This document shows, in pieces, positions 1,380 through 22,700 of a DNA stretch of 25,338 nucleotides; within the stretch, counting starts at the first letter, position 1, and every line of letters starts with the position of its first letter. The notes below the pieces were generated by a model. It worked only from the letters and a program-made list of their open reading frames with translations, was not told where the DNA came from and did no database searches. The DNA lies in NCBI GenBank assembly GCA_000388065.2, contig KB932212.1; one strand, 5' to 3'. The DNA comes from Fonticula alba ATCC 38817 (lineage: Eukaryota; Protista; Nucleariida). Position numbers and translations under genes: made by a program.

Positions 1380-1497
1380 ATGGGCGACTCGGCCGTCCTC
1401 GAGCTGGCACAGTGCTTCCCCGACACGGATCGCTCCCTCCTTGAGCGGATCTATGACTTCAACAATCGCGATGTCGGTGCGTCCGCTCCCCTGCCCT

Positions 1498-1549
<52 letters not shown>

Positions 1550-1630
1550 CGCGCACTGACACCCCCCCACCCGCCGCCCCAGGCATGACCAAGTCCGCCC
1601 TGTCGAAGATGCTCCGCCGTGCTTCCAACG
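1380..1630 (+). other. CUE/UBA-like ubiquitin-binding domain (exons 1-2 of gene 1)
   Basis: Spliced translation MGDSAVLELAQCFPDTDRSLLERIYDFNNRDVGMTKSALSKML fits the CUE pattern (L..xFP..d..l...l......v..a...l): FP motif and three-helix length. Confidence 0.65.
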
Positions 1631-2936
1631 GTGCGCCGCAACCTCCGTGCCCTTCGCGCGCGCCCCCCCNNNNNNNNNNNNNNNNNNNNNNNNNNNNNNN
1701 NNNNNNNNNNNNNNNNNNNNNNNNNNNNNNNNNNNNNNNNNNNNNNNNNNNNNNNNNNNNNNNNNNNNNNNNNNNNNNNNNNNNNNNNNNNNNNNNNNNN
1801 NNNNNNNNNNNNNNNNNNNNNNNNNNNNNNNNNNNNNNNNNNNNNNNNNNNNNNNNNNNNNNNNNNNNNNNNNNNNNNNNNNNNNNNNNNNNNNNNNNNN
1901 NNNNNNNNNNNNNNNNNNNNNNNNNNNNNNNNNNNNNNNNNNNNNNNNNNNNNNNNNNNNNNNNNNNNNNNNNNNNNNNNNNNNNNNNNNNNNNNNNNNN
2001 NNNNNNNNNNNNNNNNNNNNNNNNNNNNNNNNNNNNNNNNNNNNNNNNNNNNNNNNNNNNNNNNNNNNNNNNNNNNNNNNNNNNNNNNNNNNNNNNNNNN
2101 NNNNNNNNNNNNNNNNCCCCCCCCCCCGCTGCCAGCCCCCACGCCGGAGCCGGCCTCCGAGCCGCGGGACAGCCTCGACCTCCTGAAGCGCCTGGAGACC
2201 TTCCGCCGGAGCTCGCTCGCCGCCCTGCCCGCCACCGACGCCACGGCCACCCCCCTCCTGCCGCCGGCGCTCATCTCCTCCGAGGGCCTCTCCTCGCTGG
2301 ACATGATGGCCGCCGGCCGGGTGGGCGTGCAGCTGTCCGCCGCCGACCTCGGGCTGGACCCCCGCGTCCAGGGGTACTCGCCGGGCGCCGACGCCGCGCA
2401 CATCCTCACCTGCCTGCACCGGCTGCTGGTGTCGCCGCTGGCGCACTCCGTCAGCCTGGACGTCCCGTGGAATGACACGCGCCTGATCCTGGCCCTGACC
2501 GAGCTGCCGGCCCTGCTGGCGGCCGAGGGCGACGCCGCGCCGCCCATCGACCCGGGCATGCTGTCCAGCCGGCTCTTCCTCAGCCTGTCCTTCTGCCGGC
2601 GTGATGGGTCCTTCCATGAGCTGCCGCTCCCCTCGGATCCGACGCAATTTGCCCCGATCTGCTTCTCGCTGCCCTCCATCCGCAACCACTTCCTCCACTG
2701 CGTGCGGGTCCTGGCCAGCATCCGCCCGGCCCGGCTGCTGCTCGGCACCTGCGTCAACGCCCTGTTCAAGGTCCAGGAGACCCAGCTCGGGCACTTCGGC
2801 CCGCTCTACTTCGAGGCGTCCATCCAGGCCAAGCACTACTCCCCGCGCTCGCGCGTGTCCCTGAACCTTTCCTATGAGGTTCGTCGCACCCGTTCTCTCT
2901 CTCCCTCTCCCTCCCTCTCTCTCTCTCTCTCTCTCT

Positions 2937-2974
<38 letters not shown>

Positions 2975-4412
2975 TCTCACTCTTCTCACTCTCTCTCTCT
3001 TCTCTCTTCTCACTCTCTCTCTTTTCTCACTCTCCCTCTCTTCTCACCCTCCCTCTCTTCTCACCCTCTCTTTTCTTTCTCTCCCTCTCTTTTCTTTCTC
3101 TCCCTCTCTCCCGTCGCATGCCCTTGTCTGGATGCTGCCCGCTCTCTGTCGTGTATGCTCATGATGCCCCCCCCCCCCCCACACACAGCACCTCCACCGG
3201 AATGCCAACCAATACACCGAGGTGTTGCACGCGGCCGGCGACAAGCTGGACTTCCTGTCCATCACCTCGGTCCCCAGCGACTTCGTGGCCAATGTGGCCG
3301 AGATCCCGGCCGACTACTACCACATGCTGGCCAACCTGGCGTCCAGCGAGGATGACATGGTGCTCAACATCGGCTGGTCCTCGGACAATGACGCGTCGTC
3401 GCACTTCCCCGCCCGGCCGGACGCCACGGCCCAGGATGGCTTCGAGGAGCAGGTGGCCTTCATCTATGCCCTGCCGCGGCTCCTCAGCGAGGCATGCCCC
3501 AACTACACCATGTGGTACGGTCTGCATGATCAGCTCCCGGAGCAGAGCGGCCTCGGGCTCTTCGTCACCCCGCCGGCCGTGGCCCAGCAGCCATCGACGC
3601 CCGGGCTCGGGGAACTCCAGCTCCTGAATGCCCGCCACGCCAAGCCCATCTACCACCTGTGGGTCCTGGTCCGGGTGTCGAACGACCGGCGCCTCGACGC
3701 GCTGGAGGCCACCACCGGTGCGGCGGCCGAATCGCCCCAGCTGGCCCCCCTGTCGCTGGTCGCCGCCGCCGCCGCCGCCGCCGCTCCGGTGCCCGGGGCC
3801 ATCCCGTCCCCCCCTCCGCCGTCGGTCGCGGTCGCCGACCCGCCGGTATGTATCGTGCTGCCACCGTGCTGGTTCTTCTCCTTCCCCTCTGCCTGCTCTC
3901 TCTCTCTCTCTCTCTCTCTCTCCCCCCAGCTAACTGGAGCTCCTGCCCATCCCCCCCCCACCCCCGCTCCCCCGTTCTCTCCCTGATACCAGGTGGCCAG
4001 CCTGCCACCCAAGCTGTCTGGCCCGCCGCCGGCTGACTCCCAGTCGCTCTCGGAGCAGCAGGCCCAGCAGTTCCGGCTGATGCAGGCCGGCCTCGCTGGT
4101 CCGGCCGCCACCGGGCCGGGCCTCCCTCAGGTCCCGCTGCCGCCACCGGCTTCGCCCATGCCGCCCAAGCCCGGCGCCATGGCCGCACCCCTGTCGCCAT
4201 CGATTCCCTCCCCCCTGGCGCCCTCCTCCCTGCCGGACATGGACCTCCTGCGTGAGCGCATCCAAGCCCAGTACCTCACCCGGCAGCGGGCCGCCGAGCA
4301 GCATGCCGCCGAGTCCGCCTCGGTGCCGGCCCAGCCGCAGGTCCCGGCGCAGCTGCACGCCCTGCCGCCGCCGGCGCAGCAGCATTCCTTCCCCCCGCCA
4401 CAGCACCTCCAG

Positions 4413-4444
<32 letters not shown>

Positions 4445-6536
4445 CCACCACCACCACCACCACCAGCACCATCATCATCTTCACCAGCACCAGCACCAGC
4501 ACCAGCAGCAGGTCCCCCTGCCGCCGGCACACATGATGCTGGCTCCGCCGCCACCGCCCGTGGCCGCCGGTGCTGGCGCGGCCCCCCCCCCGGCCAAGCT
4601 CTCCCCCCCGGCCACGCCGCCCATGATCTCGGTCACCAGCACCCCGATGGTGACCACCACCCCGTCCACCATCCTTCCCCTGCCTCCGGGGCTGGTCCCC
4701 TCGTCGGCCCCGCTGACCCCTTCGGCCCGGCACATCCAGCAGCCGGTGGCCCTGAACGAGGTTGAGGGGTGGCTGATCGCCCGGATCTCGGCCTCCATCC
4801 GCGGGTCCCTGGACCTGACCCCCAACTCCAAGAACATCCTGCAGTATGACCATCACCTGTCCGGGCTGACCGGCACCGGGTCCGGCCGCCTGTGGCAGAT
4901 GCTCTCCGAGACGGGCATGGTACGTGGCGCCTGCGTCCGCCCCCCCNNNNNNNNNNNNNNNNNNNNNNNNNNNNNNNNNNNNNNNNNNNNNNNNNNCCCC
5001 CCCCCCCCCCCCCCCCCCTCGCAGCCGGACATCATCTGCGCCACCATCACCTACCAGGTGACACAGCACATCCTCCGGAGCGGCTGCCTCCGGGGCGGGC
5101 TGCCCCTCAATGGGGTCGAGCTCTTCGAGGCGGCCGACATCGCCCGGGTCACCCAGCCGCTGATCTTCCCGGTGGCCGAGCTCATCCTCGGGCACCAGCC
5201 CACCATGGACCGCCTGCGCCGGCGGGTCATGATCGACAAGATGGTCAAGAATGACTCGCTCTCCGGGCCGCCGAATACCACCTCCCGGTCGCATCGGGAC
5301 CCGGCCGCGCGCGGGGTCGATGGGACTCGCATTTTCCACGAGATCGCCGAGGACCAGGGCCCGCGCGCCAGCATGGAGGACCGGCTAATTGCCCTGCCCT
5401 ATGTGAATGAGCTCTTCGGGCTGTCGCTGCCCCAGCGGCTGTCCTTCTATGCGGTGCTCGATGGCCATGGCGGCCGGCGGGTGGCCGACTACGCCACCGA
5501 GCTCCTGCCGGTCCACATCTTCCGGTCGCCGGTGCTCGGCGAGAGCCTGGAGCAGGCCATCCGCGGGGGCATCCATTCGACCAACGAAAATTGGAAGGGC
5601 AAGGTGGCCCGCGAGTCGATGGTCGTCCCGCCGAAGGCGGTCAACTCCCTGCGCGGGGCCGGGGCCACCCTGGCCGCGGCGCTGGTGGTCGACTCGGCCG
5701 AGGTCATCGTCGCCTGGGTCGGCGACTCGCAGGTGGCCCTCTTCTCGCCGTACCAGTGCCCGGCCACGGTGGCCGCCCCGGCCGGCCTGCTGGAGGACCC
5801 CCTCCCGGCATACACCCCGCACATTGAGCCGCTGCAAGTGGTGGCCCCCCACCGGGCCAGCGACCCGGCCGAGCAGGATGCCGTCGTGGCCCGCGGCGGC
5901 TTCGTGTCCATGGTCGGCGAAACGGCCCGCGTCAATGGGATCCTGGCCGTGCCGCGGGCCATCGGCGATGTCCAGCTCCACAGTGTCATCACCTGCGACC
6001 CGACCATTCGCACGGTGCGCCTCGGGGCGTCCCCCTTCCGCGGGGGCGCCGGGGCCGGCTCCGCCGACGGGGGGGCCTCCGGCTCCCCCGCCTCCCCGGC
6101 CCCGGCCGCCGCCGCCGCCGGCGCCACCACCTCCACCACCCCACCCGGCACCATGGCCGGTTCCTCCTCCTCCTCCGCCGCCGCCGCCGGCGCCGGCGCC
6201 ACCTCGCGCCACCACCACCCGTCGCTGGTTTTGACCCCGCAGCATCCGCTGCTGGGAGGCCACTCGCCGATGGATGACGCCGGCGATGGGGTGCTCTCGC
6301 CGGACACGCCCCGGGCGCCGGGCGCCGGCCCGGAGCCCGAGAACCGGATTCTCGTGGTCCTGGCCTGCGATGGGCTCTTCGACACGCTGACCCCGGCCGA
6401 GTGTGCGCCGCTCATCGGCGACCACCTGGGCCGGAACTTCGGCTCGGCGCAGGGCCTGGCCGTGGCGCTGACCCGCTTCGCCCGGGCCTCCGGCTCGACG
6501 GACAACGTCTCGGTGCAGGTTCTGGAGTTCAGTTGA
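1380..6536 (+). CDS. Multidomain PP2C (PPM-family) phosphatase: CUE-like domain, inactive GH-like TIM barrel, Pro/Gln/His-rich linker and PPM1E/F-like catalytic domain, ~1327 aa, 6 exons
   Basis: Exons 1380-1476, 1583-1630, 2136-2878, 3189-3845, 3993-4919, 5025-6536 (TGA). All junctions are GT..AG and phase-compatible (1,1,0,0,0); total 3984 nt. PP2C motifs: QGPRASMEDR, YAVLDGHGG, AWVGDS, GILAVPRAIGD, LACDGLFD, GSTDNVSV. Extra exons could be hidden in the gap at 1670-2116. Confidence 0.9.
1670..2116. other. Assembly gap (447 N) inside intron 2 of gene 1
   Basis: N run flanked by poly-C. Confidence 1.
2320..3540 (+). other. Glycoside hydrolase clan GH-A-like (beta/alpha)8 barrel, probably catalytically dead (exons 3-4 of gene 1)
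   Basis: Alternating strand/helix pattern with motifs in the order seen in prokaryotic GH-A/GH53-like proteins: FSLPSIRNHF, LLLGTCVN, K..SPRSRVSLNLSYE, LDFLSITSVPS, EIPADYY, VLNIGWSS, EEQVAFI, WYGLHD. Recognised from memory of the family; no HMM was run. Confidence 0.6.
2893..3110 (+). repeat. Degenerate (CT)n polypyrimidine microsatellite in intron 3 of gene 1
   Basis: About 220 bp of almost pure C/T inside intron 2879-3188. Confidence 0.9.
4405..4510 (+). repeat. CAG/CAC trinucleotide repeat encoding a poly-Gln/poly-His tract
   Basis: Translation HLQQHQQQQQQQQHHHHHHHQHHHHLHQHQHQHQQQ in exon 5 of gene 1. Confidence 0.9.
4947..4996. other. Assembly gap (50 N) inside intron 5 of gene 1
   Basis: N run flanked by poly-C, between donor GTACGT at 4920 and acceptor AG at 5023-5024. 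Confidence 1.
5330..6533 (+). other. PP2C catalytic domain, PPM1E/PPM1F (POPX/CaMKP)-like
   Basis: MEDRLIALPYVNELFGL followed by YAVLDGHGG resembles the PPM1F segment MEDRHVSLPSFNQLFGL...AVFDGHGG. Metal-binding acidic residues are present in MED, DGH, CDG and TDN. Confidence 0.85.
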
Positions 6537-9492: not shown

Positions 9493-10287
9493 NNNNNNNN
9501 NNNNNNNNNNNNNNNNNNNNNNNNNNNNNNNNNNNNNNNNNNNNNNNNNNNNNNNNNNNNNNNNNNNNNNNNNNNNNNNNNNNNNNNNNNNNNNNNNNNN
9601 NNNNNNNNNNNNNNNNNNNNNNNNNNNNNNNNNNNNNNNNNNNNNNNNNNNNNNNNNNNNNNNNNNNNNNNNNNNNNNNNNNNNNNNNNNNNNNNNNNNN
9701 NNNNNNNNNNNNNNNNNNNNNNNNNNNNNNNNNNNNNNNNNNNNNNNNNNNNNNNNNNNNNNNNNNNNNNNNNNNNNNNNNNNNNNNNNNNNNNNNNNNN
9801 NNNNNNNNNNNNNNNNNNNNNNNNNNNNNNNNNNNNNNNNNNNNNNNNNNNNNNNNNNNNNNNNNNNNNNNNNNNNNNNNNNNNNNNNNNNNNNNNNNNN
9901 NNNNNNNNNNNNNNNNNNNNNNNNNNNNNNNNNNNNNNNNNNNNNNNNNNNNNNNNNNNNNNNNNNNNNNNNNNNNNNNNNNNNNNNNNNNNNNNNNNNN
10001 NNNNNNNNNNNNNNNNNNNNNNNNNNNNNNNNNNNNNNNNNNNNNNNNNNNNNNNNNNNNNNNNNNNNNNNNNNNNNNNNNNNNNNNNNNNNNNNNNNNN
10101 NNNNNNNNNNNNNNNNNNNNNNNNNNNNNNNNNNNNNNNNNNNNNNNNNNNNNNNNNNNNNNNNNNNNNNNNNNNNNNNNNNNNNNNNNNNNNNNNNNNN
10201 NNNNNNNNNNNNNNNNNNNNNNNNNNNNNNNNNNNNNNNNNNNNNNNNNNNNNNNNNNNNNNNNNNNNNNNNNNNNNNNNNNNNNNN
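9493..10287. other. Assembly gap (795 N), possibly hiding the first exon of the R3H gene
   Basis: N run followed by a C run. Confidence 1.
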
Positions 10288-12595: not shown

Positions 12596-13010
12596 CTCGC
12601 GCCACCACACACACATACACACACATACACATACACACACATACACATACACACATATGCCCATGCGCCGGTCCGTGCAGCTGTCGCAGGACCATGCGCT
12701 GGCGCGCTGGGAGGCCCGGTGTGCCGGGCGGCCGGGCCCCCCGCCGCCCGGGGCCGACTCGCCGGCGGCCCGTGCCGCCCCGGCCCTGCGCGTGGCCTTC
12801 CTGGCCGAGGAGCTGGTCGTGCGGCAGTGCGGCGACCGGGTCTTCGCCCCGGGGGGGCCTGACCAGCCCCTGGTCGCGCACTGCCTCAGCTCCAAGACCG
12901 CCGGCTCCAAGGCCGCGTCCCTCGCCCGGCATGGCCTGTGGACGGTGCCGCCGGCCGGGGCGCGCACCTCGCGCGGCAGCTCCGACACGGGGCCACACCG
13001 CCCGCCCTGA
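10774..13010 (+). CDS. Nucleotide-diphospho-sugar transferase (PF03407, GT77-like glycosyltransferase), ~549 aa, N-terminal signal peptide or anchor
   Basis: Exons 10774-11194, 11334-11822, 11979-12388, 12681-13010 (TGA), phases 1,1,0; total 1650 nt. Motifs: VTEAFLDVADNWL, LWAVRMGLLQLLLECGLDVLHSDLDAVWL (DxD), SRGTFP..V..LLGVTGCMGF, FDDQAALNRML, VAHCLSSKTAGSKAASLARHGLW. N-terminus MLCLVLALLAAVLARAAAQ is hydrophobic. Confidence 0.82.
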
Positions 13011-13037
13011 TGCACTTGGCCCTGGCGCGCCTTCCGC

Positions 13038-13127
13038 NNNNNNNNNNNNNNNNNNNNNNNNNNNNNNNNNNNNNNNNNNNNNNNNNNNNNNNNNNNNNNN
13101 NNNNNNNNNNNNNNNNNNNNNNNNNNN
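13038..13127. other. Assembly gap (90 N) between the convergent GT and GDE 3' ends
   Basis: N run followed by poly-C. Confidence 1.
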
Positions 13128-13271
13128 CCCCCCCCCCCGGAGGGCGCAGGCAAGAAGACAAGGGTGGCTGGCGTACGCCCGGCGGCCGGACCGGCACAGC
13201 AGGGCCACAGCGCGGGCGAATGCCCAGCCAGGCGTGGGGCATTTCTAGTGCGCCGTGCGCGCTCGCGCGCC

Positions 13272-14062
13272 TCACCAGTAGGTCATGTGCAGCCCGGCGC
13301 CCCAGGCCTCCATCGAGGCCTCCAGCGCCAGGGCCGAGCTCCAGGCCTGGGTCGGGCAGGAGAGCGGCGTGGCCGGATGGCCGGACAGGTTGGTCAGCTC
13401 CGGCAGCCCGTGCCAGCGCCAGTCGGTCTGCAGGGCCCCGGCCGCGGCGGCCGGGCTGTGGTCCTCGGTCGGCGGGATGAACATGTGCGCCCGGTGGCTG
13501 CGCATGATGAGCGTGCGCCGCGCGCGACGGAACTGCCCCGCGCGCCGGGGACGGGGGGGGGGGGCGGCGAGGCGGATCACCAAGGGGGAACACCTGGTCA
13601 GTACATGGCGCGTGGGGGGGGCGGCGTGCGCGCGTGGGTCCCTCCGCCCGGGGTGGGGGGACACCCCCGGCGGCCGGGGCGCACGTACCGAGCGCGAGAG
13701 GTTCAGCGCGGCCGTCTCGTCGATGGCCTGCGCGCAGTCGGTCCCGGTGTAGCCGGCGCGCAGCTGGCCCACCAGGTCCGCGCGCGAGAGGCCGAACTGC
13801 CCGAGGTGCGCGTCCTCCTCGGCCGGGGTGGTGGCCTCGAAGCCAGACGACGAGCCGGACGGCGAGAGCCCCGACTCCCCGGGCAGGTACATGCGGATGG
13901 CGCGCTGCACCGGGCTCGAGATGCGCCGGTTCTTGCCCGCGTGCGAGGGGGCCACCAGGACCGGGTCGAACTTGATGGCCGACAGCCAGAAGAAGCCGGT
14001 GGGCCAGAGCCACTCCTGCGTGTGTGTGTGTGTGTGTGTGTGCGTGTGTGTGTGCATGTGCA

Positions 14063-14093
<31 letters not shown>

Positions 14094-16687
14094 GTGTGCG
14101 TGTGCATGTGCATGTGCATGTGCATGTGCGTGTGCGTGTGCATGTGCATGTGCATGTGCGTGTGCGTGTGCATGTGCATGTGCGTGTGCGTGTGCGTGTG
14201 TGTGAGTTTCGGTTGCGTGTGTGGGGTGGTCGGTCACGCGTGCATCGGTGCGAGAAAGTGCCGCGCGCGCGGGGGGGGGGGCGGCCGCGAAAGAGGGGAA
14301 AAGAACACCCGAGAGGCGCCCTGCCGGGCCACAGCCCAGGCCAGGCACCAGGCCGAGGGGGGGGGGGGGGGGGAAAAAGGACCGGAAGAAAGCCCGGCGC
14401 CGGGACACGCACCGGACCCTGGTGATAGTTGAAGCCCCCGTCGACGAAGGGGTCCCCGGTGGCCCCCTCGCTGCCCAGGTAGAAGGGCCGGAAGCGCCAG
14501 TCGGCCGGGTCCAGCGTGCGCATGCCGGTGCCCGACCGGAGGATCCACTGGTCGTGGGTGTAGGCGCCGGATTGGATGCGCGCGGCGCGGGCGGCCTCGC
14601 CCCGGCCGCGGGTGCTGGCCGCCAGCGCCGCCGCCGTCTGGGCATTGAGGCTGGTCGGCTGGCCGGGCTTCGGCCGGAGGATGGCCGCCGTGGCATTCAG
14701 CCCGACCAGCGCGTGATTCGGCTGGAAGAGGTCCGGCGCCACGGCCATGGCCACCGACACATTGGGCCGGAGCTGGTAATCGCCCCAGCCATCGCACGAG
14801 CCGAAGGTGTCCTTGTAGATGCCCCGCCGGTGGACAAACCGCGCGTCCACCATGTACGCCCCGTCGTCCGCCGGCTCGGCCGGCACCCAGAAGCACGCCT
14901 CGAAGGTCACCTCCAGCAGCCGGCACCACTCCACGAAGGGCACCCACAGCCAGCGCCCCTGCAGCGGGCACCGGTCCGGGTCTTCCGAGCTGCCGGTGGT
15001 GTCGATCCGGCCGATGCCCGGCGGGCCGGCCGCCAGCGGCGGCGGCGTGGTCGGCGGCGTGGCCGTGGGCGCCATGCCGCCGCCCAGCGACCCGGTCGCG
15101 CTGGCCGGCGGCCCGATCGGCACGCGCTCCGCATGCCAGGTGGCCGGGTTGTCGGTCAGGTCGTCCGCGACCCCGGCCGCCCGGCGGCCCTCCTCCCACA
15201 GTCGGCGGACATTGGACGGGACCCAGCCGGCCAGCGGCGGCGGCGGCGACGGCGGCGGCGCCAGTGACGCCGACCCCGGGGCCGGCATGCCCACGCCCGG
15301 GGCATGGCCCTCGGCCGGGCGGGCCTTCTTGTCGGCTGGCCGGCCGCCGCCGTCATCCCCCCGGCCGGCATCCTGGCCCGGGGCCCGGCCCTCCTGCCAC
15401 AGGTCCTGGTACTCGGCGGTCGACCGCCAGCGCCGGGCCCCGAGGAGCTGGTGCCGGCGCCAGGCGGCCGGCGGCTGCCACTCGCCCGGCAGCGCCTCCA
15501 GCCGGCCGAGGATGTTGTCCACGCGCAATTGCACCGGCTCCGGCAGCGGCCGGGCCAGGGCCGCGGGCAGCCCGGCGGCCAGGGCCGCCTCCGGCCGGAC
15601 CACGCACGCCGGCACGCCATCCACCCGGATGGCCCCGCACCGGTGGGCAAAGGCCAGGAACCGCAGGGTGGCATACGACAAGCCGGCCAGCTCGATGGCG
15701 GCCCCGTCGCGCGGGGTGGCCGGCACCCCGCGCGTGCCCCACCGCGCCGACTCGCCCATCTTGTCCATCCAGGTCCCGGCGTTGAGGCGATTCCCGCCGG
15801 CCACCAGCCCGGTGCGCCAGTCGACATACGCCTCGACATTGAAGCCGGGCCCGTGCATCCGGTCGTCGATCTGGCCACCGGCGCGGCGCTCCCGGAATTG
15901 GATGGTCCCGGCCGCATGCCGGGTCACGATCTCCACCAGGATCTCCCCCAGGGGGGTGGGCTCCGGGGCCAGGCGCGCGCCCTCCGGCCAGTCCGGGTCC
16001 AGGTCGTCATCGGCGAAGCGCCGCCACACCCGCCACCCGAGCACCTCCCGGGCGGCGCGCTGCAGGAAGGGCACCCGCCCGGCCGGGCCCAGCCCATGCC
16101 AGCTGCTTTCCAGGGCCCGGAGGAAGGACGCGTCCAGCCCCGGGCCCCGGGGCTCGGCGCCCGGCCCCGCGGACAGGCTCCCCTGCCAGTGCATGAGCAG
16201 GGCCCGGGCCACGACCGTCTGCGACACGGCGTACGGCAGCCACCAGGAGGCATCGCGGCAGTTGTACCGCGGCCGGCGGCCGCCATCCGCCAGGTTGGGG
16301 ATCAGCCCGTGCCGCAGGAGCGACGCGATGGCCAGCAGGTGATCGCGCGCCGCGCGCATGCGGCCCAGCAGCAGCAGCAGCCCGCGGAAGGCTGCCACCG
16401 GCGCGCCGCGCCCCATGGCCCCCGGCGTAAAGGGTGCCCCCGTGCCCCATGGCGTGCCATGCTGATGGTCAGTCTCGCGTCGGGGCCTTCACATGTGTGC
16501 GATTGTGCGAGTGCGCGCGATTGTGGCCCGGTGTGCTTGTGTGTGTGCGCGCGCGAGCGGTCAACGAGCCACGCCCCTCCAAACGAGGCGTGCTGCATGG
16601 GCGCGTCCGTTTGTCCTGGCGCGCCCAGCAAAAGACGAGCACACAGGCCCCGATGCGCGTTCGGCCGTCTGTACATATGTACACCGG

Positions 16688-19700: not shown

Positions 19701-22700
19701 GCACCGGGCTCCAGGGCCGCGAGGGATGTCACCACGGGGTACTGCTCGCCGGCGCGGGGAGGGGCACCACCGCGCCGCCATCAAAACCGGTGTCAGTGCC
19801 GGCCACACACACACACACACANNNNNNNNNNGGTGGGGCGGGCGGCGTAGCACGCGCGGTTAGTGCATGCTTACATTTGCATATATATATATATGTACGT
19901 ATGTGTGCGTGTGTGCGTGTGTGTGCGCGCGTGTGTATGCGCGCGTGCGTGTGTGGCCTCCAGCCTGGGACCCAAGCCCGGAGCATGGCAGCGCCCCTGC
20001 TGTCAGGCAGAGCCCGGCCCCCGCCCAGGCCCCCCGCCGACGCCCCCGCCGCCGCACACTGTCTCTCTCTCTCTCTCACACACACACACAAGGACACATG
20101 GACACGCAAGGGGAGGGCCCCGCACGCACCGCCCAATTCCGGGAAACACTCATCGAAGCTGGTCCAAGGACAGGGGGTCGGCGGGTGCACCGGCACCGGG
20201 ACCAGGTGCTCGGGGCTGGCCGCCGGATTGGCATCCTCCCGGTCCAGGTAGAGCTTGACCGGGGCGCGCAGGAGCAGCACACCGCCCGGCGGCAGGCGCA
20301 TCGAGGTGATCCGCGTGAAGAGGCCGCCCTTCTCCTCGTGCATGTGCAGGCGGTCCTCTGTGCGCGCCGCCACCCGGCCGTCAGCGCAGAGCCGGAGGGC
20401 GGGAGAGGGGGGAAAAAAAAAAGAACGGCACAGCCCCGGGCCGGGGAAGGTGAGTGACGTGTCCCGGTGCGTGTGCCTTCCCCTCGAGCGCCCCCCCCCC
20501 CCCCGGGTGCCCGGGGAAAGGCCCACAAGCAAACGCAAGTGGACGGGCCTACGTACCATCCCAGATCTTCTGCATGCCAAGATCATGCACGCGGGCCCAG
20601 TCCACCGGGCCGATGGGGCCATGCCCGCCGGCCGCCGCCTGGGCCTCGAGCCACTTGCGCCGCCTGTCGGTGTCCAGCTCCACCCAGGACATCATGACCG
20701 GCTGGAAGCCGGTCTGCTCCAGGGGGATGTCCGCGCTGACATCTGGATGCCGGGCGGGCAAGCGCGCGCACGCGAGTCCGGAGCAAGGCACGCAGCGAGG
20801 CAGGGCGCCAGCGAAGGACCGAGAGAGGGGACAGCGTGTCAGTCCCCATCGCACGCACGTGCACACCTCGCCGGGGTGCACACACACACACGCGCGCGCG
20901 CACACGGCCCGATGCACGGCGCCAGGCAAAAGAACAGGCCCACCGAGCACGTACGATGGTCCGGCGTCTGGTCAAACCCATCGCCGAAGGCCGGCCGGGC
21001 CACCAGCACAAAGGCCGAGGCACAGGTCACGGCGAATTCATCGTCCGCACCCCCGGTCATCGGGCCGTCCGGCTCGTTGCACATCCCGCGGCACTTGGCC
21101 GCCATGCAGGCCGGGGCCTCGCGCCGCCACCGGCGAATGACGATGAACTCCCCGCGCTGGGCCACCGACGTGGCCCAGTTCCCCACGGCGTGGACGCCGG
21201 AATCCCGGCAAGGGGCCAGCCGGGCGAAGAGCCGCATGAGCTTGGATTTGACTGTCGCCCGGGCGGGGGGGGGGGGACGCACGCCGCCGGGCCGCGAGGC
21301 GCAGGCGCAGAAGCACGTCAGCGAGGCCGTCATGCACGGGGGCAGGCAGGAGGCCGAGTCGCGAGCACGCGCGCCCGGGAATACGCACCGGGCTCCAGGG
21401 CCGCGAGGGATGTCACCACGGGGTACTGCTCGCCGGCGCGGGGAGGGGCACCACCGCGCCGCCATCAAAACCGGTGTCAGTGCCGGCCACACACACACAC
21501 ACACACACACGCACACACGCACACCCGCACCACGCACGGGCGCACGCCGGGAGGGAAGGCAAACACAAAGGCACAAAGCCCACAAGCGCCGCCCCGGCCC
21601 CCCCCCCCTCCCCTCGGCCATGCTCCGGCCGCACGGGTCCCGCGCTTGCCCCCGCCCGCCCACCGGCCGCCGGCCACCGGCCGATGCGCGCACCTTCGTC
21701 CGCTCGCCGCACACCTCAATGCGCCGGGAAAACAGCCGGTCGGCGCCGATGACGCTGGCGCGCGGCCCGCGCCCGCCGACCAGCGACACCAGGGCCGCCT
21801 TGGCCAGCTGCATGCGCGGGTCGGTCGGCACATCGTTGTCATGCGTCTGGTCCGCCAGGATGGCGGTCGGGGTGACTTGGGCTGCGGGCGCCCGCAGGGG
21901 GGTGGACGGTCAGAGGACACAAAGTACACCGCGTGCGAGGGCGCAGCCCAGCGTCCCCGGGCCACGCAGCCACACAGGGGCCCGTGTTGGCGATCGCGCG
22001 CCAGCCGGCCAGCGGGCCGCGAGCCCGAGGCCCGCCCCTCCCCTCGCCCCCGGACCGCGGCAGCAGGCCAGCCAGCCAGCCCCCCGGCCCCGGCACCCGG
22101 GCTCGCGGGGGGAGGCCAAAGAAAAAGCCCTCCCAGCACAGCACCCCCGCCGGTACGTACTCAGCAGCGACCAGTAGCCCGGGTAGCCGAGGTGCCCGTC
22201 GCCCATGCCCGAGGCCATGGCCTCGCCGAGCAGGCGCATGAGGTCCGGCGTGCTGCGCGCCTGGGCCGCCTCGCGCACCAGCGCGTCCAGGCCCAGCCGC
22301 GCGGCATACGCCCGGTCGGCCGACGCCCGCCCGGTGAAGAGCTCGGCGATGACCCGGATCCCGGGGTTCACCTGGCGCGCCTGGTCCAGCAGGTACTCCG
22401 CCACATGCCGCGGCGTGCTATGGCAGTTGTCTGGGTCCGGGGGGGGGGGGGGGGGGGGCGGATGCCGACGGGCCGTGGCGCAGGGAGGGTCAGCATCCGG
22501 GCGCCGGAGGGCCCCGCCCAGGGGGGAAGCAGCAAAAAAAAAAAAAAAAGAAGAAAAAAAACAAGGCCCGGCCGATGCACACGGCCACCCCCCACACCAC
22601 CGGCAACGACAGCCGCGAGCCGGTCAGCCCCGCCCCGTGTCCGCCGGGCACGCACCGATGCGGAACATGTCGAAGGCACTGGCCATGGACTTGGTGTACA

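Follow-up and report, generated by a model that had tools for sequence, protein, structure and literature searches.

Pseudo-glycosidases are already known from the Klotho proteins and the chi-lectins. Alpha- and beta-Klotho are extracellular co-receptors whose clan GH-A barrels derive from glycoside hydrolase (GH) family 1; one catalytic Glu is lost per domain, the barrels act as binding modules in signalling, and beta-Klotho binds FGF tails. The chi-lectins (YKL-40 and relatives) are barrels of GH18, a family of clan GH-K that has a DxxDxDxE motif and uses substrate-assisted catalysis; in them, the catalytic acid is substituted and the ligand is bound without being cut. In laforin and SEX4, modules with proven glucan binding (CBM20/CBM48) are joined to dual-specificity phosphatases. 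Here we analyse a 25,338-nucleotide stretch of contig KB932212.1 (assembly GCA_000388065.2) of Fonticula alba ATCC 38817, hereafter the window, which is eukaryotic DNA of very high GC content whose introns are short and of the GT..AG type. A gene on its plus strand would, by homology, encode a clan GH-A-type (beta/alpha)8 barrel in exons A (2117-2878) and B (3189-3845), ahead of a PP2C (PPM) phosphatase domain (5370-6536). The explanation that we favour, with moderate confidence, is that the barrel descends from an unnamed bacterial family, has lost its catalytic residues and acts as a non-catalytic binding or regulatory module ahead of the intact PP2C.

By analogy, the Klotho proteins are a closer precedent for such a domain than the chi-lectins. 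A beta-Klotho structure (PDB 6nfj) is listed among the structural matches of the model of a bacterial homologue, P0006, although Klotho proteins derive from another GH family than the window domain and are not fused to a phosphatase. The window domain does not belong to GH18, as its neighbours in both sequence and structure are GH-A families. The original prediction had described sugar binding "as in chi-lectins", which holds as an analogy of concept but not as kinship, since the chi-lectins are GH18 proteins of clan GH-K and lack homology to the window domain. Laforin and SEX4 resemble the locus in their architectural logic, a possible glycan-binding module that aims a phosphatase, whereas in the window the module is a dead GH-A barrel, the phosphatase is a PP2C and binding is only putative. 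A literature search, which did not cover most subscription papers, returned no description of a doubly dead GH-A barrel ahead of a PP2C.

At E values up to 10, neither exon A nor exon B, each searched separately, matched any Pfam model (GH53, PF07745, included), any NCBIfam model or any PDB sequence. A phmmer search with exon B against 1.84 billion representative proteins found only P0006, P0007 and P0008 (E 1e-5 to 3.5e-4), and a search of a protein atlas with exon A gave no usable match; a separate homologue search with exon A was empty, probably on account of its length window. P0006 has 366 residues and a hydrophobic N-terminal leader, and it represents at least 337 hypothetical proteins that have no precomputed Pfam domain. 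In BLASTP, residues 34-217 of P0006 align with exon A (4e-9) and residues 243-363 with exon B (5e-13); both matches are colinear, and strand 5 ends in a shared Tyr-Glu that directly precedes the exon junction. Furthermore, hhalign of a 44-member family profile against each exon gave probabilities of 94.3% (A) and 97.9% (B), and tblastn with each exon singly matched dozens of family loci. Judged by these alignments, the similarity of the two exons to P0006 is far beyond chance.

The bacterial family consists of hypothetical proteins of about 340 residues, mostly secreted, and is found in metagenome-assembled genomes (MAGs) of Planctomycetota, Pseudomonadota, Acidobacteriota, Nitrospirota, Chloroflexota and Actinomycetota, with one further MAG labelled archaeal (Promethearchaeota). 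Among the 44 members, sub-threshold Pfam matches were obtained to GH53 in 32 and to DUF5722 in 10; P0006 itself reaches 20.8 bits against PF07745, for which the cutoff is 24, and the best E value among the 44 members is 6.5e-5. A profile of the family gave no meaningful match to PDB sequences. The look-alikes of exon B retrieved by a protein language model include GH39 and Glyco_hydro_cc clusters. Homology between the window domain and the P0006 family extends over the whole barrel. The window version differs in being split by an intron, in having no visible signal peptide and in lying within a predicted multidomain eukaryotic protein.

What fold would this family have? The AlphaFold2 (AF2) model of P0006, built from the 44-member alignment, has a mean predicted local distance difference test (pLDDT) score of 91.8 and comprises eight strand-helix units. 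Foldseek matched this model in the PDB to glycosidase TIM barrels only, nearly all of clan GH-A, with GH5_18 beta-mannosidases on top (6e-12), followed by GH53 galactanases, PslG (GH39), GH1 and GH10. The nearest solved structures are those of GH5_18 (BlMan5B, PDB 6mpc/7lr8), and VIA-align superposes the P0006 model on BlMan5B with a Z score of 26.8 over 300 residues and a root-mean-square deviation of 3.1 Å. In the ESM Atlas, the structural neighbours are unnamed bacterial clusters, some of which are labelled GH53 or GH42. The geometry that defines the 4/7 superfamily in clan GH-A is a Glu after strand 4 and a Glu on strand 7, and the P0006 model has Glu175 after strand 4 (residues 169-171) and Glu285 on strand 7 (residues 281-286). 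From the aligned ranges and the titles of the structure entries, these two residues would lie near the published catalytic Glu140 and Glu257 of GH5_18. The bacterial family shares with GH5_18, and with GH53 as its nearest Pfam model, the clan GH-A barrel and both glutamates; the differences are an identity of 14-19%, scores below the Pfam threshold for the family and the window domain alike, and the absence of either Glu from the latter.

Exon A was also folded alone by AF2, with the N-terminal halves of the family as alignment, which yielded a half barrel with a pLDDT of 80.8 and a predicted template modelling (pTM) score of 0.79. In this half model, strands 1-5 alternate with helices, strand 4 comprises residues 146-151, and a Cys, residue 152, follows directly after it. 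The top Foldseek matches are again glycosidase TIM barrels, nearly all GH-A, at weak E values of 4e-3 and above; an exhaustive VIA search placed a GH5_18 chain first (Z 8.8, 160 residues), and GH18 chains gave only generic TIM-barrel matches (Z of about 7). The original prediction had called for comparison by profile and by structure, and the hhalign probabilities speak for homology to the bacterial family, the alignment of the P0006 model with GH5_18 for a clan GH-A barrel in that family.

The evidence for loss of catalysis lies in the columns that the bacterial family conserves, which were counted over 122 proteins, with only filled rows considered in each column. Of the 121 filled rows of the acid/base column, 120 have Glu; in the nucleophile column it is 121 of 122. 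At the former, corresponding to Glu175 and located directly after strand 4, the window has a Cys codon (TGC, 2750-2752, plus strand) in the context LLLGT-C-VN; at the latter, corresponding to Glu285 on strand 7, it has an Asn codon (AAC, 3366-3368, plus strand) in VL-N-IGWSS, and the subsequent Gly-Trp is kept. Both codons are in frame and lie in different exons, A and B respectively. The proposal that both GH-A catalytic glutamates had been substituted, acid/base by Cys and nucleophile by Asn, is thereby upheld, as near-invariant Glu columns align at exactly these positions. Moreover, three further family-conserved residues, located on the catalytic face or close to it, are replaced (all codons on the plus strand): Tyr252 at the end of strand 6 (122 of 122 proteins) by Val (3270-3272), Arg130 in the loop after strand 3 (121 of 121) by Phe (2612-2614), and Gln215 at the end of strand 5 (121 of 122) by Ser (2870-2872), after which the Tyr-Glu is kept. 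Further substitutions are Thr62 to Asp and Lys131 to His, and 14 residues are inserted after the strand-7 Gly-Trp. Retained are Pro63, Trp94, Glu132, Thr174, Asn177, Glu217, Asp245, Pro253, Gly287-Trp288, Trp320 and His324-Asp325, of which Trp94, Trp288, Trp320, Asn177 and His324-Asp325 lie on the catalytic face. The motifs YE, DYY, GW and W..LHD that had been noted as kept are indeed there, in columns that are invariant or nearly so among the bacterial proteins. Because both carboxylates and the supporting Tyr are gone, classical Koshland double-displacement hydrolysis would be impossible, and the assignment of the domain as a GH-A pseudo-glycosidase is, on these alignments, well founded.

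In the explanation that we favour, the barrel of exons A and B would descend from the unnamed bacterial family of clan GH-A-like glycosidases, most of them secreted. Exchange of the acid/base and nucleophile Glu, along with loss of the strand-6 Tyr, the Arg and the Gln, would have made classical double-displacement cleavage impossible, and the fold, the three Trp, the Asn and the His-Asp pair of the catalytic face would have been preserved. The barrel could then bind a ligand such as a glycan or glycan-like peptide without cleaving it, and in doing so position or gate the PP2C downstream in the same polypeptide. The metal-binding motifs of the phosphatase (MED, DGHGG, GDS, AIGD, ACDGxxD and DN) are all intact according to an alignment to PPM1E and the motif coordinates, and its match to Pfam PF00481 is strong (4.1e-30). 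Codon bias in the barrel is as strong as in the PP2C exon: GC content at third codon positions (GC3) is 0.95 in exon A, 0.915 in exon B and 0.917 in the PP2C part. The intron between the barrel exons has no codon periodicity, its GC content by position being 0.52/0.58/0.52. Since GC3 of the exons is 0.92-0.95 against 0.52 in the intron, exons A and B look like live coding sequence.

Several observations weigh against this explanation. The window domain retains only 21 of the 36 invariant and 18 of the 54 near-invariant residues of the family, and its branches measure 3.2 and 5.1 substitutions per column where the medians are about 0.3; both would also fit a decaying domain. The C-termini of the strands, which form the catalytic face, are no better conserved than the remainder (11 of 18 invariant residues kept, against 10 of 18 elsewhere). 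By itself, the half model of exon A cannot tell GH-A and other TIM barrels apart, as an EAL domain scores Z 8.6; it shows half of a (beta/alpha) barrel, and the assignment to GH-A rests on homology. High GC3 may partly reflect the mutation bias of a GC-rich genome, and the link between barrel and PP2C spans an inferred intron and a 50-base assembly gap. Finally, no orthologue or eukaryotic relative of the barrel was found among the 1.84 billion representatives, metagenome contigs and bacterial genomes, where searches for close relatives, with exon B in the metagenome contigs and with an exon B-headed alignment in the bacterial genomes, likewise found none. Transfer from bacteria would be a plausible origin of the barrel.

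Among the alternatives, the one that survives best is a lectin-like sensor that, like the chi-lectins, would bind a defined carbohydrate in an intact sugar pocket. The three Trp, the Asn and the His-Asp pair kept on the catalytic face speak for it, as do precedents for ligand-binding GH pseudoenzymes, with beta-Klotho among the structural matches. Set against this, the domain lacks seven conserved residues that are polar or on the pocket side (Thr62, Arg130, Lys131, Glu175, Gln215, Tyr252 and Glu285), the insertion of 14 residues follows strand 7, and no signal peptide is seen, so that a bound glycan would probably have to be intracellular. We regard this alternative as possible, though doubtful. 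As such, the part of the original prediction in which the sugar pocket was retained is only half borne out: several of its aromatic and polar residues are there, but Tyr252, Arg130 and Gln215 are lost, the insertion is present and the face as a whole is no better conserved than the rest of the barrel.

So what would a barrel of this kind bind, if our favoured explanation holds? We consider three options about equally probable: a glycan; a peptide or protein partner, by analogy with beta-Klotho and the FGF tails; or no ligand at all. As the predicted N-terminus shows no signal peptide and PP2C enzymes act inside the cell, the module is probably intracellular. A more ambitious version, which we think rather unlikely, is that a bacterial barrel was taken into a holomycotan amoeba, stripped of catalysis and rebuilt as an intracellular sensor that converts a glycan or glycan-mimic signal into dephosphorylation by PP2C, in conjunction with a ubiquitin-binding CUE domain. 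Should this be true, it would represent a carbohydrate-to-phosphorylation signalling module of a kind not previously described. If the barrel binds any ligand, a degradative enzyme fold would have been recruited as the input domain of a phosphatase. Furthermore, the bacterial P0006 family, with at least 337 proteins, a confident GH-A model and a near-invariant pair of glutamates, is by its modelled structure a candidate for a new glycoside hydrolase family, and its substrate, once known, would be the first ligand to try on the amoeba domain.

The points that would also fit decay lead to a second alternative, in which the barrel is a functionless relic of a horizontally acquired or ancient glycosidase domain and now serves as a mere spacer. 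The extreme branch lengths, the loss of 15 of the 36 invariant residues and the failure to find a eukaryotic orthologue in the searches of representative proteins and metagenome contigs are what one would expect from it. A relic would not readily account for some 470 open codons with GC3 of 0.92-0.95, equal to that of the PP2C exon, nor for the conservation of hydrophobic core and structural motifs, the confident half barrel that AF2 gives for exon A of the window itself, or the similarity to bacterial members that is still detectable over the whole barrel. We therefore think it improbable that the domain is such a relic.

Phylogenetic placement of the barrel differs between its two halves. 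In the tree of exon B, the window falls in a starred nine-row clade of members with both glutamates, which includes a Planctomycetales MAG; in the tree of exon A it is placed elsewhere, without support. Constraint that was relaxed or altered once catalysis had been lost would fit so long a branch, to which compositional drift may also contribute. The bacterial family itself holds variants at the catalytic positions. P0007 and L029 are fusions of a barrel with a PD40 beta-propeller, and have Asp at the acid/base and Ser at the nucleophile position. In L021-L027, which form a second propeller-fused group, the acid/base residue is Asp and the Tyr is replaced by Asp or Glu (by Ala in L022), and in tblastn alignments several Dehalococcoidia members show Ser, Pro or Gly in the nucleophile column. 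Descent of the window domain from the bacterial Asp/Ser subgroup (P0007, L029) was considered and is not supported, given the exon B placement among Glu/Glu members, the unsupported exon A placement and the great length of both branches.

A third alternative, about as improbable as the relic, is that the fusion is an artefact of the gene model, such that barrel and PP2C are separate genes, or the CUE exons part of another one. Exon 1 (1380-1476, plus strand) contains the ATG and the N-terminal part of a segment that by eye reads like a CUE domain, including an FP motif, and ends at the donor G|GTGCGT, as read from the sequence; exon 2 (1583-1669, plus strand) encodes the remainder of this CUE-like segment and enters an assembly gap (1670-2116), which hides its putative link to exon A. 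Exon A starts at the edge of the same gap with a Pro-rich linker, encodes barrel strands 1-5 from about 2330, and ends at the donor GAG|GTTCGT. The intron that follows (2879-3188, plus strand) is 310 bases long, of the GT..AG type, with acceptor CAG|. Exon B encodes strands 6-8 up to about 3680 and an Ala/Pro-rich tail, with the donor CCG|GTATGT, after which an intron from 3846 to 3992 (plus strand, GTATGT..CAG) is predicted from the sequence. The long exon C (3993-6536) comprises a first part (3993-5369, plus strand) with a Gln/His-rich low-complexity linker and a further, unassigned region, in which a 50-base gap (4947-4996) lies, and then the PP2C domain (5370-6536, plus strand), with its stop codon at 6534-6536.

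Separate genes would be in line with the fact that the barrel frame, if unspliced at 3845, ends at 3986, and with the gaps at 1670-2116 and 4947-4996, which interrupt continuity. What argues for a fusion instead is that the GTATGT..CAG intron bears the CT-repeat signature of the other introns of the gene, that codon periodicity breaks off over 3846-3992 and returns, in frame, at 3993, and that from there the frame is open with high GC3 up to the PP2C. Barrel and PP2C would form a single polypeptide. Hence, the earlier description of the domain as fused to a phosphatase is right in so far as the barrel precedes an intact PP2C, but the joining of the two depends on a predicted splice and crosses the 50-base gap.

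That the domain might still be an enzyme with non-canonical chemistry, with the Cys, a retained Glu (family positions 132 and 217) or an Asp of the inserted loop as catalyst and possibly a non-glycoside substrate, would accord with the variation of the same positions in full-length proteins of the bacterial side lineages (P0007, L029, L021-L027) and with the appearance of GH1 myrosinase, an enzyme without the acid/base Glu, among the weaker structural matches, but is highly improbable with both carboxylates and the supporting Tyr lost together and no replacement acid aligned at either position.

Some features of the bacterial loci were observed in passing. Examples of the barrel-PD40 subgroup in which Asp replaces the acid/base Glu are found at L029:3794-5875, L021:3992-5989 and L001:210-2144, and in L029 and L021 the adjacent gene encodes a Wzx-type polysaccharide flippase (PF01943/PF13440). 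By analogy with PslG, these neighbours hint at a role of this subgroup in exopolysaccharide processing. In seven loci (L002, L013, L014, L021, L022, L025 and L026) a second, diverged barrel paralogue lies within a few kilobases.

Within the gene, an Ala/Ser/Gly-rich insert of about 118 residues (approximately 5997-6350) splits the PP2C domain between the AIGD and ACDG motifs. Each of the three predicted introns contains a CT/TC dinucleotide repeat between its splice sites (1505-1537, 2894-3110 and 3896-3922), and in the middle one the TC microsatellite of about 217 bases makes up most of the 310-base intron. The window has five assembly gaps (1670-2116, 4947-4996, 9493-10287, 13038-13127 and 19822-19831), two of which, of 447 and 50 bases, are inside this gene. 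Their lengths are nominal, since the frame differs across the 447-base gap, and one and the same frame is open before and after the shorter one although 50 is not divisible by three. Ahead of the start codon, a stretch of some 234 mostly-C bases (962-1195) can be read as polyproline or polyglycine in several frames, which gives rise to long spurious open reading frames on both strands. Elsewhere in the window, a long open frame on the minus strand (12889-16416) has a match to PF06202 (2.2e-44), the C-terminal domain of glycogen debranching enzyme; that a phosphatase with a glycosidase-like domain is encoded nearby may be a coincidence.

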